From the sequence record OQ708376.1: DNA of 64,000 nucleotides; one strand, 5' to 3'. The notes below the pieces were generated by a model that was not told where the DNA came from, did no database searches, and saw nothing but the letters and a program-made list of their open reading frames with translations. Numbering within the stretch: position 1 is the first letter of the stretch; every line of letters starts with the position of its first letter. Shown piece by piece: positions 31,307 to 51,878 of this stretch. The translations under genes and the position numbers were made by a program.

Positions 31307-31666
31307 ATGGCTAAAACAATTTCTTTAAAAAATGAAAATGTAGGACAACGCAAAGATGGTTTCTTTGGTTTTTCTTGGACAACATTATTCTTTGGACCGT
31401 TCCCTGCATTGTTTCGTGGTGACTTTATTACGTTCATCGGTGCATTTGTAATTTACTTCATCCTCAACGCAGTGTCATTTTGGATTGTGGGTACAATTGC
31501 AATGGTTGTATGGGCATTTCTTTATAATAAGTACTACACCGTGAATCTCATCAAGAATGGGTATAAATTCAATGGCACACATGAAGAAAATGCTGAAGCT
31601 GCAATGGCTTTGCAAATTGATTTGAATAAAAACAACACAGTTGATAAAAATAAAGATCCTGAATAA
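31307..31666 (+). CDS. membrane protein (GFSWTTLFFG family)
   Basis: GFSWTTLFFGPFPALFRGD, hydrophobic helices, YNK.Y...L; AGGAG upstream of ATG 31307. Confidence 0.75.
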   Translation: MAKTISLKNENVGQRKDGFFGFSWTTLFFGPFPALFRGDFITFIGAFVIYFILNAVSFWIVGTIAMVVWAFLYNKYYTVNLIKNGYKFNGTHEENAEAAMALQIDLNKNNTVDKNKDPE

Positions 31667-31885
31667 ATGGAAAAATACGATATAATTTACGATTATTATG
31701 GTAAGGCTTATATGAAGTGTGGGCGTTATGTTGAACTCTCTAATAGAGAATCAATAGATCCCCACACTCTTATAACAATTCATAATTCGTACTATAAAAA
31801 AGTTACAATAGCTAATTTTGCAACATACGTAAATAATCCTTTATTTCCTTACATTATTCAGTACTACTGTAGAGTTATCAAATAA
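31667..31885 (+). CDS. hypothetical protein
   Basis: Abuts the previous stop. Confidence 0.6.
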   Translation: MEKYDIIYDYYGKAYMKCGRYVELSNRESIDPHTLITIHNSYYKKVTIANFATYVNNPLFPYIIQYYCRVIK

Positions 31886-31897
31886 GGTAAAAAAGAA

Positions 31898-32308
31898 ATG
31901 TTAGCTGATGAATTTATGTCACTAAGTATCAAGATATTTGATATACTAGGTGATGAAACAGATTTCAATCTAAGCGACAAAGATATTCCATTGGAAGATG
32001 GTGGATACTTTTTTGCGATTGGAACTACGTATAATCTGGATCTTTCAAAGCCTATCAGTGATGATAGTGATTATAATGCAACAACATATTTTGATTTCCA
32101 GCTTGATGGACATAAAGAGCGTTTACTAACGTACAGACGTAAAGGTAGTTTCAATAGAACCGAGATTACAATAATGGATTTTGAAAAACGCATTGAACTA
32201 GCTAAGAAACATCCATTCATCAGTACTCATACATTTAATAGCCTAATCGATCTATTAGATAATTATCCATATACAATCCGAGGGTCGTTACGTTTAAATG
32301 CAGAATGA
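31898..32308 (+). CDS. hypothetical protein
   Basis: Packed + strand ORF. Confidence 0.7.
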   Translation: MLADEFMSLSIKIFDILGDETDFNLSDKDIPLEDGGYFFAIGTTYNLDLSKPISDDSDYNATTYFDFQLDGHKERLLTYRRKGSFNRTEITIMDFEKRIELAKKHPFISTHTFNSLIDLLDNYPYTIRGSLRLNAE

Positions 32309-32483
32309 AATCTTCAAAAAAGAATACGATGGTGAAAGTCTCTATGATATTCAAAGAGACGTACATGAAGCATTCGATTCAAGATTTAACCCATTAGCTG
32401 AACAAATCCCACAAGATGAGTTTGGTTTTCAGGAAGGCACTTTCACAGTGACTATTACATGGAGTCCAGATGAGACTAGCTAA
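32298..32483 (+). CDS. small acidic hypothetical protein
   Basis: Overlaps neighbours. Confidence 0.65.
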   Translation: MQNEIFKKEYDGESLYDIQRDVHEAFDSRFNPLAEQIPQDEFGFQEGTFTVTITWSPDETS

Positions 32484-32586
32484 ACTTGTCATAGGTTGTA
32501 GTGCACTTGCTGCATATATGCTTTTTTCCGCACCAACCAATGTATTACTGTTAATTTGGGCAGTTGTTATATTAGCAGTACTTTAA
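32470..32586 (+). CDS. very hydrophobic micro-protein (38 aa), not in the ORF track
   Basis: MRLAKLVIGCSALAAYMLFSAPTNVLLLIWAVVILAVL; GGAG upstream. Confidence 0.5.
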   Translation: MRLAKLVIGCSALAAYMLFSAPTNVLLLIWAVVILAVL

Positions 32587-32607
32587 AGCACCCTAGTGGT
32601 GCTTTTT
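32585..32607 (+). terminator. intrinsic terminator upstream of the nrdD promoter
   Basis: AAGCACC-ctagt-GGTGCTT-TTT. Confidence 0.75.
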
Positions 32608-32642
32608 CTATTTGTGCAAATAAAAACCAATGTGACTTTTCC

Positions 32643-32684
32643 TTGATATAGGTCAAGAGAAATAACCTGTTCTGACGCTATAAT
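32643..32684 (+). promoter_or_regulatory. putative class II FNR-dependent promoter for nrdD
   Basis: TTGAT-ATAG-GTCAA (32643-32656, 1 mismatch to TTGAT-N4-ATCAA) centred at -41.5 from the predicted +1; TATAAT 32679-32684; no -35. Confidence 0.75.
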
Positions 32685-32745
32685 GTTGTCTGGTGATATT
32701 AAATATCTTCACCCCCAGATGATTTCAAAATACAAGGAATGTACA

Positions 32746-34551
32746 ATGCAATTAGATAAATTATATACTGACGTAACGAATTTCCTCAATCAGAGCAATA
32801 CTGATCTTACCAACGAAAATGCGAACAAAGATGCGAAATGCGTCAATACACACAGGGATTTACTTGCAGGTATCCTATCTAAGCATTATTCACAAGATGT
32901 TATTCCAAATGAGCTAATGCAGTGGCATAATGATGGTTATGGTCATATTCATGATTTAGACTACTATATCAGCCCATTAACCAACTGTTGCTTAGTTAAC
33001 TACCCAGATATGCTAAAAAATGGATTTACCATTGGTTGTGCCAAAATTGAAGAACCAAAGAGTTTTAGTGTAGCATGTACAGTACTGACACAGATTGTAC
33101 AAGCTGTAGCTAGTTCCCAATACGGCGGTCAATCGTTGGCTCACATTGATGTCGGTTTAGAACCTTACGTTCAAAAGTCATGGGATAAGCTGTTAGAAAA
33201 ACAAAAGAAATATAATCTAAGTGATGAGTTCATTGAAGAAGAATTACGAAAAGAAGTATACGATGGATGTCAAACATTACTTTACCAGACTAATTCAATG
33301 ATTAGCACTAATGGACAAGCTGCATTCATTTCTCTTAGTTTAGGGCTTAATACTTCTAAATTTGGTAAATTAATCACTGAACAGTACTTAAAAGTTCATG
33401 AGAATGGTTTAGGTAAAGATAAGATTACTCCAGTGTTTCCTAAAGTTATTTTCTTTCTACAAGATGGTATAAACATGAATGCAAATGATAGTAATTATGA
33501 CCTTAAACATTTAGCTATGCGTTGTGCATCAAAACGAATCTACCCAGACTTTGTTTCAGTACCATTAAATCACAAAGTGACTGGAAGTAGTAGTACTGCT
33601 GTAACACCGATGGGCTGTCGTTCATTCTTAGGAAAATGGGAAGATTCAAATGGAAATGAACAATACAACGGTCGTTTCAATTTAGGTGTGGTTTCTATCA
33701 ATTTACCTCTAATTGCTCTTGAGAGTACTTCTGACGGAGAGTTTTTTGATAAGATAGACGAGCATATGAATATTGCATATCGTGCTCAGATGAACCGTGT
33801 GGAGCGTTTAAAAGGCACTAAAGCGAAGCAGAATCCAATTTTGTTCATGGAAGGTGCATTATCACGTTTAGGTGCAGAAGAAACCATTGACAAGCTATTT
33901 TACAATGGTTATGCTAGTATTAGTATTGGTTATGTTGGTCTTGTTGAATGTTCAGAAATCCTCACTGGTTCTATCAGTAAGGAGTTTTGTATGTCAGTAC
34001 TGAATTATATGAAAGTAAAATGTGATGAGTTCAAAAAAGAAAGTAATATTGCTTTTAGTCTATATGGAACTCCAGCAGAGTCGCTTTGTTATAAATTTGC
34101 ACGTTGCATTGAAGCAAAATATCCTTCAGTACTAAAACGTGATTACATCACAAATTCCTTCCATCAACCAGTATGGGTAGAAAGTTCTCCATTTGATAAA
34201 TGGAGTTATGAAGAAGGGTTTGCTTACCTAAGTAACGGTGGAAATATCAGTTATGTTGAATCTCCAAACTTAGCAAACAACATTCAAGCACTTGAAACAT
34301 TAGTTAACTATGCGTACACTAAGATACCATATTTTGGTATTAACCAACCAGTTGACCATTGTTATGAATGTGGCTTCCAGGGTGAGTTCAGTGTAGATAA
34401 ACATGGTTTCCACTGTCCTGTATGTGATAATCGTAATGAGAAGACAATCTCAGTGATTCGTCGTGTTTCTGGGTACTTGGGTAATCCTTCTTCGCGTGGC
34501 TTCAATAAAGGCAAGCAACAAGAGTGTTGTGAGCGTATTCAGCACAAATAA
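32746..34551 (+). CDS. nrdD: anaerobic (class III) ribonucleotide reductase large subunit, no ATP cone
   Basis: NENANKD, HIHDLD, NCCL, QYGGQ, PMGCRS, TPAES, zinc-site CYEC/CPVC, glycyl-radical RRVSGYLG; AAGGA upstream of ATG 32746. Confidence 0.97.
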   Translation: MQLDKLYTDVTNFLNQSNTDLTNENANKDAKCVNTHRDLLAGILSKHYSQDVIPNELMQWHNDGYGHIHDLDYYISPLTNCCLVNYPDMLKNGFTIGCAKIEEPKSFSVACTVLTQIVQAVASSQYGGQSLAHIDVGLEPYVQKSWDKLLEKQKKYNLSDEFIEEELRKEVYDGCQTLLYQTNSMISTNGQAAFISLSLGLNTSKFGKLITEQYLKVHENGLGKDKITPVFPKVIFFLQDGINMNANDSNYDLKHLAMRCASKRIYPDFVSVPLNHKVTGSSSTAVTPMGCRSFLGKWEDSNGNEQYNGRFNLGVVSINLPLIALESTSDGEFFDKIDEHMNIAYRAQMNRVERLKGTKAKQNPILFMEGALSRLGAEETIDKLFYNGYASISIGYVGLVECSEILTGSISKEFCMSVLNYMKVKCDEFKKESNIAFSLYGTPAESLCYKFARCIEAKYPSVLKRDYITNSFHQPVWVESSPFDKWSYEEGFAYLSNGGNISYVESPNLANNIQALETLVNYAYTKIPYFGINQPVDHCYECGFQGEFSVDKHGFHCPVCDNRNEKTISVIRRVSGYLGNPSSRGFNKGKQQECCERIQHK

Positions 34552-34559
34552 GGTAAATT

Positions 34560-34892
34560 ATGGATTTAAAGCCAATTGTGGTTAACAAATACAAAGAACC
34601 GTATGATGTGTATATTGGACGTGGGTCTAAATGGGGAAACCCATTTACCCATATTAAAGATAAACAAACCAAAGCCGAGTTCATTGTTAGTACAAGAGAA
34701 GAATCAATTGAAAAATTCAGAGAATACATTATTGAACGTATTTCTTGTGGAGAAGTTAAGATTGATGAATTACTTGAACTCGCAGGGAAACGCCTTGGTT
34801 GTTTCTGTAAACCAAAATCATGTCACGGCGATGTTCTTGTCGAAATAGTGAGTGCAATATTAGATGAATTACCAGACGATAATCAAGGATGA
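34560..34892 (+). CDS. DUF4326-like protein
   Basis: DVYIGRGSKWGNPF, L.GKRLGCFCKP..CHGDVL. Confidence 0.8.
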   Translation: MDLKPIVVNKYKEPYDVYIGRGSKWGNPFTHIKDKQTKAEFIVSTREESIEKFREYIIERISCGEVKIDELLELAGKRLGCFCKPKSCHGDVLVEIVSAILDELPDDNQG

Positions 34893-35334
34893 TTTAGTAA
34901 ATGGAGAGGGCGTTCGCTGCTCTTTATTTGTTAGTGGGTGTTCGCACGGATGTGATGGTTGCTTCAATGAAGAAGCATGGGACTACCGAAGTGGACAAGA
35001 GTTCAGTACTGAAACAGTTGAGATTATACTACAGGAACTAAAAAAACCATATGTTAGTGGTTTGTCACTTCTAGGCGGCGATCCATTAATGAAAAAGAAT
35101 ATAGATGAAGTTTTAAATCTATGCAAAGTAGTTAAAGAAACTTATCCTAGTAAAACTATTTGGTGCTGGAGTGGGTATACTTTAGATGAGATTATGAAAA
35201 ATCATGCTAAAGATATACTTCAGTACTTAGATGTATTAGTTGATGGTAAATTTATTGAGTCCGAAAAGAATTTAAAATTACCTTTCCGTGGTTCAAATAA
35301 TCAAAGAATACTATATAAAAATAAAGATTTTTAG
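34864..35334 (+). CDS. nrdG: anaerobic RNR activase (radical SAM)
   Basis: NGEGVRCSLFVSGCSHGCDGCFN, LLGGDP, RGSNNQR. Confidence 0.96.
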   Translation: MNYQTIIKDDLVNGEGVRCSLFVSGCSHGCDGCFNEEAWDYRSGQEFSTETVEIILQELKKPYVSGLSLLGGDPLMKKNIDEVLNLCKVVKETYPSKTIWCWSGYTLDEIMKNHAKDILQYLDVLVDGKFIESEKNLKLPFRGSNNQRILYKNKDF

Positions 35335-35337
35335 CAT

Positions 35338-35361
35338 AAGCACCCGTTGGGTGCTTTTTTA
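35338..35361 (+). terminator. intrinsic terminator after nrdG
   Basis: AAGCACCC-gtt-GGGTGCTT-TTTT. Confidence 0.8.
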
Positions 35362-35368
35362 TTATGTA

Positions 35369-35376
35369 TATAAATA
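35369..35376 (+). promoter_or_regulatory. T4-type late promoter
   Basis: TATAAATA directly after a terminator and upstream of virion genes. Confidence 0.65.
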
Positions 35377-35410
35377 CATTAACTAATATCTAATTTATAA
35401 GGGATATATA

Positions 35411-38107
35411 ATGTCAAAGAAAATATATGGTGGCTTAGATGTCACACATAATGTGACAGTTAATGGTAAAAGAACAATTCAAGGAATAAATGAACAAGTT
35501 TTTGATTCCAACGGTAACTTGGAATTAGATACTTATTCCAGAGATGAAGTACTAGATATAGTAAGTATGATGCCAATCTCCCATTATGGTTCACAAAACT
35601 ATCTACCTGCGGGTGTATCTGGGGATTTCAATGGTGCATCAGAAAACCAGTCACAACGTAGAAATAAAATTTTATTAGAAAACGATGGTACACTAGTACT
35701 TTTACGTAGTGGGACAAACGGTAGTGTTGAGGGATTATTTTATTCATATTTGGCTAACGCATTATCAGTTGATGACATGAGCCGTACAATTAACACTAGT
35801 CGTCAATACAAGCCTGGGTTTTTTGGTTCAAATAGAGTTGCGATTGGTTTATACAATACTGATCCAAATATTTTACTCGGTAGATATATTGATACTTCTA
35901 ACAGTACTAATGGTTTGTTCATATCAATTACCAATGGTACATTAGATGATAAATTGCATACTGGTTTTTTCGTTAACCAAGCAGATATATCACCTGAAGG
36001 TGGTATTGAATATGCTATGATGGCAGAAGATGGTTCTATATATGTTTTTAACGTACTTAATGAAAATAACCAACTACAATTAGTTGTTGTTAAAGTTGTT
36101 TATAATATAAGCAATGGTACTTATACTGCAACTCGAATTACTGGATGGACTACAAAAACATTCTATAATACAACTTATTCTGCACAGAATAACATGGTTA
36201 TTACTAATCAAGTAACTTCAACTAATATAGCAGATAAGCCTTATGTGTATGTACCACAAAACCTACGTGGTATTGGGATTTATATGACATCCATTGATTT
36301 GTATGTTGCACAGCAACCAGGAACACAGAACTTTCGTTTTAGAATGAATGGTGATGCATGGTTTACAATGGCGACATATAATGTCCGACCACAACATAGC
36401 TACAGCTTTGCATTTAATATGAGTACTAAACAATGCACCCTAGACGCTGGGAATGACATAGGTTCATATCAAGCACCATTGGTTATAACCAATACTGGCT
36501 CTGCATTAGTGCCTACAGGTAACGTTTTAAATAATGATCCATTATATAATCATGCTGGTGCAAGAAACATTTATAGTTCATATTTTTATTTGAATTCTGG
36601 TGAAGCTTTTTGTACTGCATGTCCAAACTTAGCAGAACCATTACTTATGCAAAAAGCTAAGTTTCCTATTCAAATAGTTTATAGTATGCTGAATGTCCGT
36701 GCTGTACTTTCTACTGACTTCAAAGGTGGTATAGTTCGCCCGTCTTTTGGTTCAGCGGTTGGTTCATTTATTAATGGTGTAGAATTACTACCAGATAACA
36801 GTACTAAACAATATTCACGTGCATCAGGTAGTGGTGGATTTAGACCATCATATGCAGTTCATAAAAGTACTCCTAATTTTACATTTAAATCATTATCTTT
36901 AGGAACAATACAAGGTTATGAACCTACAGTTGAACGTGCTAATGTTGATGATAATGCAAATAATAGAATTTTTATTAGTAGTATTTCTGGGTCAACTGTC
37001 ACAACCAATGGTGGTATTTTTATGGTTGGGCAACGTTATTCACAATCATTATCCTATGATAAAAACTTAAATGGCACAGGAATTATAAGCGTTACACAAT
37101 CAGTACTGGACAATTTTAGAAATACTGAATATGCCAAAGTTCTAAGTGATTGGAATTTATCAGCACAAGCATACCGTGATATGACACTATTTGTTCCACA
37201 ACAAACAGACATTCCAGCTTTTGTTATGTTGAGTACAATTACTAATGATTATAGAAACTATATTAGAATTGCTGAAGTTAATGTCAATACTAGAGTTGGT
37301 AATATTACATCTATTACATTTAAGCGTTTAGTACTTGAGAATACGTATGGTGATAACTTTACACCAACTGGGAATGGTTCGATTGCATCTTCTTCTGTTG
37401 GTTTGACAATATATGATGGTGGTTCATTCTACTTCATTGGTGGTTCTGACCCATTATCACATCCAACAATAGGTAATACTGCAACTCATCAATTTAGAGC
37501 ATATGTAACTAAATCAACTGCACAATTTACAAGTTTTATAATTACTGGTTCTCATGCCAGTTATGAACAAGGAAGTCAACCAGCAGCGTTACCTGGTATT
37601 GGTTTTGGAATTTTTGAACCAATGGATTACTCAAATAAAATGACATTCAAAAAATATGGAACAACGATTGCAGACTATAATAACTGGACTGCACAAGGTA
37701 GCCCAATTAACGTAGTATCCCAGGACGTTGCTCAAGGGTTTATTGTATATTTTACAGAGGAAACACCAGTTATTCTTTCAGGTAAGTCATTTTCACTACC
37801 AGTTTCAAATATTGATTTGAGAACTATTAAGTCTAATCCAGCAAATACAACATTTTATGTATATGTTAAATTGGAACAAGGATTGGCAAACTATTACATA
37901 ACTACTGATGTTATTTCTGAAACAGGAACAACTGCATATAATATTTTTTGGATAGGTACAATTCAAACTAATGCAATTCAAATCGAAACAATTAATATAC
38001 AAAAACGTTCCCGTTTAGATATATTTGGTGCTTCACTTGAATCAGCAGGTTCATCGTTCCCAGTTAGCTACGGTCTACCATCACAAACAGGAACCATAAA
38101 CTGGTAA
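35411..38107 (+). CDS. putative tail/virion protein, paralogue 1
   Basis: 898 aa, S/T/N/G-rich; shares N- and C-terminal blocks with the next two genes; late promoter upstream. Confidence 0.7.
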   Translation: MSKKIYGGLDVTHNVTVNGKRTIQGINEQVFDSNGNLELDTYSRDEVLDIVSMMPISHYGSQNYLPAGVSGDFNGASENQSQRRNKILLENDGTLVLLRSGTNGSVEGLFYSYLANALSVDDMSRTINTSRQYKPGFFGSNRVAIGLYNTDPNILLGRYIDTSNSTNGLFISITNGTLDDKLHTGFFVNQADISPEGGIEYAMMAEDGSIYVFNVLNENNQLQLVVVKVVYNISNGTYTATRITGWTTKTFYNTTYSAQNNMVITNQVTSTNIADKPYVYVPQNLRGIGIYMTSIDLYVAQQPGTQNFRFRMNGDAWFTMATYNVRPQHSYSFAFNMSTKQCTLDAGNDIGSYQAPLVITNTGSALVPTGNVLNNDPLYNHAGARNIYSSYFYLNSGEAFCTACPNLAEPLLMQKAKFPIQIVYSMLNVRAVLSTDFKGGIVRPSFGSAVGSFINGVELLPDNSTKQYSRASGSGGFRPSYAVHKSTPNFTFKSLSLGTIQGYEPTVERANVDDNANNRIFISSISGSTVTTNGGIFMVGQRYSQSLSYDKNLNGTGIISVTQSVLDNFRNTEYAKVLSDWNLSAQAYRDMTLFVPQQTDIPAFVMLSTITNDYRNYIRIAEVNVNTRVGNITSITFKRLVLENTYGDNFTPTGNGSIASSSVGLTIYDGGSFYFIGGSDPLSHPTIGNTATHQFRAYVTKSTAQFTSFIITGSHASYEQGSQPAALPGIGFGIFEPMDYSNKMTFKKYGTTIADYNNWTAQGSPINVVSQDVAQGFIVYFTEETPVILSGKSFSLPVSNIDLRTIKSNPANTTFYVYVKLEQGLANYYITTDVISETGTTAYNIFWIGTIQTNAIQIETINIQKRSRLDIFGASLESAGSSFPVSYGLPSQTGTINW

Positions 38108-51190: not shown

Positions 51191-51191
51191 T

Positions 51192-51219
51192 GGGACATTA
51201 TATGTTCCAATGATATAAT
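51192..51219 (+). promoter_or_regulatory. promoter, GGGACA-N16-TATAAT class
   Basis: GGGACA 51192-51197, TGA+TATAAT 51214-51219. Confidence 0.7.
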
Positions 51220-51293
51220 GTATATAGAAAATGACAACGGACATTGAAAAATGGACACTGAGAACCTACTTCTCTTGAAAATGTAAAGGATAG

Positions 51294-51410
51294 ATGAGCT
51301 TTACCGTTGTAGCGAACAGCAGAAGAAACCTGTTAGAGTACTGGCATTTAAACAAACACGATGTAAGACCACGAATCACGGCGACACGGCTGTATAAAGA
51401 ACTCCGATAA
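51294..51410 (+). CDS. candidate micro-ORF (38 aa)
   Basis: MSFTVVANSRRNLLEYWHLNKHDVRPRITATRLYKELR; AAGGA 3 nt upstream. Confidence 0.3.
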   Translation: MSFTVVANSRRNLLEYWHLNKHDVRPRITATRLYKELR

Positions 51411-51433
51411 GCATACAGAGAGTTCCTAGATAG

Positions 51434-51598
51434 ATGTATAAGGTTCGCACCTTACCAGATTTGCTAAGGGAGTTTAAGAATAGCGGACGCAATTTTACAA
51501 GAAAGTTGCGTCCAAAATTTGAGAACAGGTACTACTTTGATCGAATAGAGTTAGTACTGAGTGCTGTTGATGAAAAGACCAGCGACCGTTGCATATGA
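51434..51598 (+). CDS. candidate micro-ORF (54 aa)
   Basis: MYKVRTLPDLLREFKNSGRNFTRKLRPKFENRYYFDRIELVLSAVDEKTSDRCI. Confidence 0.35.
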   Translation: MYKVRTLPDLLREFKNSGRNFTRKLRPKFENRYYFDRIELVLSAVDEKTSDRCI

Positions 51599-51677
51599 CT
51601 GCGATAGAGAGAAACCGAGCAACCCGCTTTCGCTCTCTAAATTTTGGTACAAGAAAGATCCGTCCAAAATTTGAGAA
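51496..51677 (+). repeat. 30-nt direct repeat, two copies (51496-51525, 51648-51677)
   Basis: TACAAGAAAGTTGCGTCCAAAATTTGAGAA vs TACAAGAAAGATCCGTCCAAAATTTGAGAA, 28/30 identical. Confidence 0.9.
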
Positions 51678-51693
51678 ATTCGCAATTCGATAA
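51595..51693 (+). CDS. candidate micro-ORF (32 aa)
   Basis: MTAIERNRATRFRSLNFGTRKIRPKFEKFAIR; ATGA overlap with the 54 aa ORF. Confidence 0.35.
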   Translation: MTAIERNRATRFRSLNFGTRKIRPKFEKFAIR

Positions 51694-51713
51694 TATCCGA
51701 TGCCATCATCGTC

Positions 51714-51738
51714 AAGAGAGACTTAATTGTCTCTTTTT
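51714..51738 (+). terminator. intrinsic terminator
   Basis: GAGAC-ttaatt-GTCTC-TTTTTT. Confidence 0.7.
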
Positions 51739-51878
51739 TATTATCTTCATTCCCCTGCGGGGGATGTAATAGTCCTCAACAAATCCCGTCAAGTTTTTAA
51801 AGTACATTATCATTTTCAGAAGGAACTAGTTTACGAAGTAAACGCAGTGACTTCTTGAGTTACGAGAGAACGAAGTGA

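Follow-up and report, generated by a model that had tools for sequence, protein, structure and literature searches.

Escherichia phage vB_EcoM_CRJP21 (OQ708376.1; 366 kb; Asteriusvirus, a Rak2-like jumbo myovirus) carries a 160-bp gap upstream of nrdD, the gene for a class III ribonucleoside-triphosphate reductase, which is compared here with the closest described promoters. The analysis was performed on a stretch of 64 kb of this genome (the window, whose position 32000 is position 94000 of the record). From the sequence we assign a probability of about 0.72 to the reading that this gap is a promoter module dependent on the host oxygen sensor FNR and gating the nrdD-DUF4326-nrdG operon.

The described promoter closest in layout is pnirB of Escherichia coli (class II), in which a TTGAT-N4-ATCAA inverted repeat likewise abuts the -35 region and the -35 element is weak or absent; the distance from the box to the -10 is 21 nt in pnirB and 22 nt in the window. 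The phage case is unlike pnirB in that it lies in the genome of a strictly lytic jumbo phage, where the polymerase may carry a phage sigma factor, in that its start is predicted, and in that a second invariant element is located at a fixed distance of 43 nt.

With respect to the enzyme, the described counterpart is nrdDG of E. coli and Salmonella, which has the same function (class III reductase and activase) and the same proposed regulator, and which is FNR-activated in enterobacteria (PMC2892513). The fifth base of a half-site is where the box in the window deviates, and the same holds for TTGAGctacATCAA, one of two FNR-like boxes read upstream of nrdD in E. coli. The host promoter has these two FNR-like sites, NrdR boxes and a long leader, whereas the phage promoter has a single site; neither the paired FNR sites nor the NrdR boxes of a host-type nrdDG promoter were found in the latter. 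The host FNR sites are reported to lie at -64.5 and -33.5 (Roca et al. 2008). No NrdR-like box (three or fewer mismatches to the consensus) was found near phage nrdD, and the total number of such boxes in the window was at chance level; NrdR control as in the host was therefore rejected as a candidate. Beyond the box, the regions upstream of nrdD in E. coli and the phage show no sequence likeness, and phage NrdD has only 40-43% identity to the nearest cellular counterparts that were found; a captured host promoter was ruled out by the differing architecture and by this low identity.

Sites of a host environmental regulator in front of phage genes have been described for lytic cyanophages, in which PhoBR sites precede phage metabolic and replication genes, with support from transcriptomic data and electrophoretic mobility shift assays (PMC10976474). 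The likeness to the present case lies in the position of such sites and in an expression that follows host physiology; the two cases share neither the signal (phosphate versus oxygen) nor the regulator family nor the hosts, and the phage FNR case is sequence-based. The T4-type late promoter (TATAAATA) and the predicted Rak2-like late motif, (A/C/G)TAAATA, provide a further comparison, since a TAAATA element before nrdD fits the predicted late-promoter set of phage CBB (ATAAATA, CTAAATA and GTAAATA; PMC5259590). Unlike these late promoters, the nrdD motif keeps a constant spacing to the site of a host activator, precedes a nucleotide-metabolism gene and not a structural gene, and starts with T in the window.

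Predicted FNR box and first promoter in the window

Two predicted features make up the first promoter (P1) and its activator site:

32643 to 32656, no strand assigned: predicted FNR box TTGATATAGGTCAA; 9/10 consensus positions, TTGA/TCAA core intact, centre at 32649.5
32679 to 32684, plus strand: -10 hexamer TATAAT of P1, 22 nt past the box, without -35 and without TG; predicted start at about 32691

Both the box and TATAAT were checked to the base and are found where an earlier note on this DNA had placed them, the sole mismatch of the box being the fifth base of the right half-site. The same note had reported no recognisable -35, and there is indeed none at 16-18 nt: the hexamers upstream of TATAAT at these distances read GAGAAA, AGAGAA and AAGAGA, and no TG precedes the -10. 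Other promoters in the window do have a -35, their ordinary form being T(T/G)GGAC or TTGAC(A/G), a spacer of 17-18 nt, and TGnTATAAT. Without a -35-like hexamer and without TG, the nrdD promoter of the window looks activator-dependent. A +1 at 32691, 7 nt past the -10, would put the centre of the box (32649.5) at -41.5; the arithmetic of the earlier note is correct, and the position rests on a start that is predicted from the -10.

Boxes with up to one mismatch are not unusual alone (15 in the window, 10.3 expected); a box followed by TATAAT after 21-23 nt occurs once, against an expectation of 0.065 (64 kb, both strands). There are six intact TTGA-N6-TCAA cores in the window, of which only 32643-32656 is intergenic; intergenic DNA makes up 6% of the window. 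A leftward promoter on the palindrome was rejected on our own reading of the sequence, which shows neither a suitably spaced -10 nor a gene on the minus strand.

A recurrent phage promoter class was observed at 2374, 10144, 17857, 27094, 51214 and 61680, comprising T(T/G)GGAC or GAGAC, a spacer of 17-18 nt and TGATATAAT; the last of these sequences occurs 11 times in the window (3.1 expected). The counterpart class in phage CBB, TGAAACG..TGnTATAAT, is tabulated before DNA-synthesis genes (PMC5259590).

Conservation among Rak2-like phages

The regions upstream of nrdD were compared in 17 relatives from phage records and in four IMG/VR loci added later. The relatives comprise Asteriusvirus (G17, 121Q, ph0011, JNE01 and A4), Alcyoneusvirus (RaK2), Mimasvirus (GAP32, CBB and XbC2) and Eneladusvirus (fHe-Yen9-03, Serratia BF and pEa_SNUABM_12), together with Erwinia phage Kaldavass (unclassified, and nearly the same as XbC2 upstream of nrdD), and with fENko-Kae01, Salmonella phage 7t3, Erwinia phage Hallingskeid and one IMG/VR contig. 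A megablast search with positions 32000-36000 matched CRJP21 at 100% and returned 36 near-full-length relatives, including 121Q, PBECO4, phAPEC6, G17 and Sharanji.

The box is located 83-97 nt upstream of the nrdD ATG in 17/17 relatives and in 4/4 of the further IMG/VR loci. Conservation of box and spacing, which the earlier note had proposed as a check, was thus observed: the box is present in every Rak2-like relative examined, and the -10, where there is one, lies at 22-23 nt. Every non-Asteriusvirus relative except L002 has a box with 10/10 consensus positions, mostly TTGATCTAGATCAA; the fifth-base deviation of the window is shared by the boxes of L002 and of the more distant phages Nernie and TS9 (see below). 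For 15 non-identical sequences, the information content of the ten specified positions is 1.91 of 2 bits, compared with 0.74 bits over 45 nt upstream and 0.86 bits over 22 nt downstream, and in distant genera the identity to the window drops to 0.31-0.49 in the flanks, with box identity at 0.79 or above. FNR sites are separated from CRP sites by T versus G in the half-site (TTGA versus GTGA), and all sequences have the FNR-type core TTGA/TCAA and none the CRP-type core GTGA/TCAC.

In RaK2, Hallingskeid and the Asteriusvirus phages, 22 nt separate the box from TATAAT, and in L002, fENko-Kae01, 7t3, L151 and L184, 23 nt separate it from TGATATAAT; TATAAT at 22-23 nt past the box was counted in 11 relatives. 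The geometry predicted for the relatives is class II, with the box centre at -41.5 or -42.5 from the -10-derived start.

Other conserved blocks were observed upstream of the box. The sequence TTTGT(G/A)CAAA, about 22-33 nt upstream, is conserved in Asteriusvirus and RaK2 (window region 32606-32642), and AA(T/A)GT(G/A)C, about 7-15 nt upstream, is found in most lineages; Mimasvirus and Eneladusvirus share instead AAACGTTAA(T/C)CAAAG. These blocks could represent contacts of the alpha C-terminal domain of RNA polymerase or sites of a second regulator. The perfect boxes TTGATCTAGATCAA (L007-L017) contain two GATC (Dam) sites; Rak2-like phages encode adenine methylases (PMC5259590), and Dam-site methylation might influence the binding of FNR to these boxes. 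XbC2 (L014) is recorded as a Xanthomonas phage, and its nrdD upstream region including the box is nearly identical to that of Kaldavass (L010); Xanthomonas being an aerobe, either this host label or the use of the box in XbC2 is questionable.

Regulator and proposed mechanism

A tblastn search of 50,697 phage records with FNR of E. coli as the query gave no match in Rak2-like phages, and only one match elsewhere, to a short unannotated Listeria-phage record. A phage-encoded FNR/CRP homologue was rejected for Rak2-like phages on this basis, and the regulator must therefore be that of the host. E. coli K-12 encodes fnr, and the named hosts (Escherichia, Salmonella, Klebsiella, Cronobacter, Pectobacterium, Erwinia, Serratia and Yersinia) are all facultative anaerobes, the exception being the host label of XbC2. 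The Rak2-like phages described in the CBB and Sharanji papers are without an RNA polymerase of their own and encode sigma-like factors (PMC5259590, PMC11895373).

The elements, their geometry, their conservation over at least four genera, the lack of a phage FNR and the contrast with the ordinary promoters are seen in the sequences; that FNR binds and activates here, where transcription starts and that it depends on oxygen is our inference, as follows. In an anaerobic host, dimeric [4Fe-4S] FNR would bind the inverted repeat at 32643-32656 and recruit the host RNA polymerase to a weak promoter (TATAAT at 32679-32684, no -35, no extended -10), in a class II arrangement with the site near -41.5 and the start near 32691. 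The predicted transcript, of about 2.65 kb, would end at a hairpin at 35338-35356, and a second hairpin at 32585-32605 would shut out upstream transcription. In aerated cells FNR would be inactive, and the oxygen-labile reductase and its activase would be made little or not at all from P1.

The proposal of the earlier note that the nrdD operon is wired to FNR is well supported by the conserved box, the FNR-type core, the spacing to the -10 and the lack of a phage FNR. Its stronger wording, that the operon is switched on only in anaerobic hosts, reaches beyond this evidence: a second candidate promoter (P2) may be of class I or drive expression without FNR, and P1 of some relatives combines a full phage-type -35 with an extended -10.

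Second invariant element

A further element was predicted downstream of the P1 -10:

32700 to 32713, plus strand: candidate second promoter (P2), TAAATA (32700-32705) and CACC (32710-32713); invariant, late-promoter-like

TAAATA followed by (T)CACC is found at this place in all sequences (the window, L001-L017, L149, L151, L158 and L184). A gap of exactly 43 nt separates TAAATA from the end of the box in 19/19 sequences, the sequence between them being unrelated among genera and the distance from TAAATA to the ATG being variable (27-41 nt). With A32711 as +1, the box centre would be at -61.5, which is the classical class I activator position. On this sequence evidence, TAAATA..CACC probably marks a second start near 32711.

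Most non-Asteriusvirus relatives have C or G before TAAATA, whereas the window, the other Asteriusvirus phages, RaK2 and some Mimasvirus phages have T there; the form TTAAATA is absent from the CBB list, and the CBB promoter tables have no entry for nrdD, CBB_141 (PMC5259590). The leader (32691-32745) folds no better than shuffled sequences (z 0.48) and gave no Rfam match; an RNA element in the leader was rejected on these two results, and the constant spacing relative to a DNA site points the same way. Without RNA structure or Rfam match, the element is best read at the DNA level, as a candidate second promoter in phase with the FNR site.

Phages beyond the Rak2-like group

The regions upstream of nrdD were also read in eight outgroup phages. 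Nernie (146 kb) has a box, 22 nt and TAAAAT upstream of nrdD, and Aeromonas phage TS9 a box, 21 nt and TGnTAAAAT. The T4-like, Felix O1-like and rV5-like phages among the eight have no box, and their nrdD abuts the upstream gene or has an N-terminal ATP-cone extension. An intact core 30-160 nt upstream of the open reading frame is present in 16 of the 80 best phage NrdD loci of IMG/VR, compared with 0.65 expected from the remainder of the same loci, and at the same distance in 0/80 bacterial NrdD loci, mostly of Lactobacillales.

No claim is made for T5-like phages: a box with one mismatch lies about 92 nt upstream of nrdD in DaisyDussoix and in two loci of IMG/VR, but most loci taken as T5-like (for IMG/VR, our own assignment, partly from NrdD identity) have no box, and a consensus sigma70 promoter is located between box and gene. 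A scan of IMG/VR for the pattern of a perfect box, 21-24 nt and TATAAT was uninformative, none of the at least 118 matches listed encoding NrdD or NrdG. Perfect or near-perfect FNR-type boxes were also observed in three IMG/VR loci with NrdD proteins of 40-44% identity (L168, L195 and L222), 34-82 nt before the longest possible open reading frame; their geometry differs, e.g. TATAAT follows only 9 nt after the box in L168.

Alternative explanations

Several observations weigh against the main reading. The -10 is degenerate (TATTTT or TATTAT, 23 nt) in most Mimasvirus and Eneladusvirus phages and missing in fHe-Yen9-03; the distance from the box to TATAAT shifts by 1 nt (22 or 23) and that to TAAATA is fixed, so that the second element looks like the constrained partner of the box; and L002, fENko-Kae01, 7t3, L151 and L184 have a full phage-type -35 (GGGACA) together with TGATATAAT at P1, so that P1 may fire there without FNR, the core promoter being weak in the window and not in these five. 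Furthermore, Rak2-like phages encode sigma-like factors of their own (PMC5259590, PMC11895373), another holoenzyme may read these promoters, FNR may not stay active during infection, and the box scan took in 64 kb of the 366-kb genome.

In one alternative reading FNR is mainly a class I activator, acting at -61.5 via the alpha C-terminal domain on a late-type TAAATA promoter that is possibly read with a gp55-like sigma factor, TATAAT being secondary or incidental. We regard this as possible, though on balance unlikely. It is favoured by the 43 nt from box to TAAATA in 19/19 sequences though the DNA between is unrelated (a terminator hairpin in Mimasvirus and Eneladusvirus, a -35/-10 in the other lineages), by the invariance of TAAATA and CACC, by the -61.5 centre in the window with a conserved A as +1, by the match to the CBB late list (PMC5259590), and by the poor P1 -10 in two genera. 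It is disfavoured by the window form TTAAATA, which is not on that list, by the lack of TAAATA enrichment in the intergenic DNA of the window (about 6 against about 4 expected, by a rough composition estimate), and by Nernie and TS9, which show the class II layout only. In addition, we know of no host activator that works with a T4-type late sigma factor, and -61.5 and -41.5 are two helical turns apart, so that both geometries are compatible. The layout found in all lineages is class II, and the most tightly constrained distance is that from the box to the late-type element. If the box is a working one, the odds that P1 is used alone are about even, and use of P2 alone and use of both promoters are each doubtful, to the same degree. 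A broader proposal holds that one FNR dimer would serve two tandem promoters, a class II promoter of sigma70-like or phage 'middle' type and a class I late promoter at -61.5 read with a gp55-like sigma factor, and that oxygen gating of nrdD would have arisen repeatedly, in Rak2-like jumbo phages, Nernie-like phages and Aeromonas phages of the genus Plateaulakevirus; taken as a whole we consider this speculative and improbable. If true, a host oxygen sensor would directly activate a phage-reprogrammed polymerase.

Binding of the palindrome by a factor other than FNR, i.e. a phage regulator of another fold or another host factor, with a coincidental match to the FNR consensus, appears very unlikely. 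Palindromes are generic operator shapes and the function of most genes in Rak2-like phages is unknown; set against this are the 10/10 match to TTGAT-N4-ATCAA in about ten divergent lineages, the discriminating base between FNR and CRP sites, which is always T, the canonical position relative to the -10, the same box upstream of nrdD in unrelated phage lineages, the lack of an FNR/CRP homologue in the phages, and the FNR activation of the bacterial counterpart of the regulated gene (PMC2892513). Less probable still is that FNR binds and represses or modulates, by dampening a constitutive phage promoter under anaerobiosis or as a roadblock. P1 does look self-sufficient in some relatives (GGGACA and TGATATAAT), and FNR is a dual regulator in E. 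coli according to the record annotation, but repression of an anaerobic enzyme under anaerobiosis would be physiologically senseless, and P1 of the window is without a -35. By FNR/CRP spacing, moreover, sites at -41.5 or -61.5 upstream of a core promoter are at activating positions. The lowest probability is given to a box that matches by chance or is a relic without function, passed on with the gene, a reading that is strongly disfavoured: one-mismatch boxes are common in the AT-rich window (15 against 10.3 expected), but the box is kept, and is nearer to the consensus, across genera with diverged flanks, its spacing to the downstream elements is fixed, and the phage loci (16/80, 0.65 expected) stand against the bacterial control (0/80).

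Operon, terminators and annotation

The operon and the elements that frame it were predicted as follows:

32585 to 32605, plus strand: intrinsic terminator of the upstream gene block, followed by a T-run; 8-bp stem, 5-nt loop, -10 kcal/mol, z -3.05
32734 to 32738, plus strand: ribosome binding site AAGGA, 7 nt upstream of the nrdD ATG; AAGGA or GGAG at the same place in relatives
32746 to 34551, plus strand: nrdD, class III (anaerobic, glycyl-radical) ribonucleoside-triphosphate reductase, 601 amino acids; Pfam NRDD 3.4e-166, Gly_radical 1.2e-22
34560 to 34892, plus strand: DUF4326 protein, between nrdD and nrdG, 110 amino acids; Pfam PF14216 6e-24
34864 to 35334, plus strand: nrdG, radical-SAM activase of NrdD, 156 amino acids; Pfam Fer4_12 2.6e-53, Radical_SAM 3e-09
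35338 to 35356, plus strand: intrinsic terminator closing the operon, of the same hairpin family as the upstream one; -11.9 kcal/mol, z -3.82

The true start of nrdD is the ATG at 32746, the start at 32683 in the list of open reading frames being wrong, and the start of nrdG overlaps the end of the DUF4326 gene. The Pfam matches identify a glycyl-radical NrdD and a radical-SAM NrdG, i.e. a class III reductase operon, and the records of relatives name the equivalent gene nrdD. In OQ708376.1, the product names of gp_224 to gp_230 (window 31307-35334) are each four genes out of place: a protein of 120 amino acids bears the name 'anaerobic NTP reductase large subunit' and one of 61 amino acids the name 'nucleotide reductase-activating protein', and the true NrdD and NrdG are labelled hypothetical.

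The bracketing of nrdD-DUF4326-nrdG by two near-identical terminators, as described in the earlier note, was found again in the hairpins at 32585-32605 and 35338-35356; AAGCACC..GGTGCTT occurs twice in the window, with 0 expected. The freedom of the operon from read-through, which the note drew from these hairpins only, goes beyond this evidence. The hairpin equivalent to 32585-32605 is annotated as a terminator in the G17 record, and AAGCACC..GGTGCTT is also located upstream of the box in RaK2, L002, fENko-Kae01, 7t3, Hallingskeid, L151 and L184. In Mimasvirus and Eneladusvirus (L010-L012 and L014-L017), a strong terminator hairpin (ATACCCC..GGGGTAT, -15 kcal/mol) lies within the spacer between box and -10, which suggests that upstream insulation is also conserved there, by another arrangement; its arms resemble NarL heptamers (TACCCCT). 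In CBB, a terminator with AGCACC..GGTGCT (Torf146, 76.5 kb) is found shortly downstream of the nrdD-nrdG block (PMC5259590).

Two further observations concern other parts of the window. A perfect T4-type late octamer, TATAAATA, is present at 35363-35370, right after the nrdG terminator and 40 nt upstream of a gene for a protein of 898 amino acids (35411-38107). The stretch 51191-51878 (688 nt) is without an annotated gene; a TGGGAC-N17-TGATATAAT promoter stands at its start, and a CGTCCAAAATTTGAGAA motif recurs within it. Neither a tRNA nor an Rfam family was found there, and the stretch may hold small genes missed in annotation or the gene of an unknown RNA.

Implications

The locus appears, from its sequence, to be a standard FNR promoter in an unexpected place, by which a lytic phage reads the oxygen status of its host. 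Full-text literature searches (open texts) found no paper linking FNR to phage nrdD, to Rak2-like phages or to jumbo phages, in agreement with the earlier note, whose author was not aware of a description for this phage group; the sole comparable case found in these searches is the phosphate control of cyanophages through PhoBR. Lytic phages are usually pictured as following a fixed temporal programme, and here the oxygen status of the host would be read through FNR.

An auxiliary metabolic gene would thereby be tied to a global regulon of a genetically tractable host, and the proposal is easily tested. The analysis also supplies a candidate promoter for a gene without one in the published promoter tables of CBB, and the late-type motif, tied to the box by a constant 43 nt, could serve as an entry point to how Rak2-like phages transcribe their genes, a machinery so far unstudied. 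Phages of gut and plant enterobacteria would, by this module, decide whether to make an enzyme that oxygen destroys, which matters for how they replicate in the gut, where oxygen is lacking, as against in aerated cultures in the laboratory, several such phages having been proposed for therapy or biocontrol.

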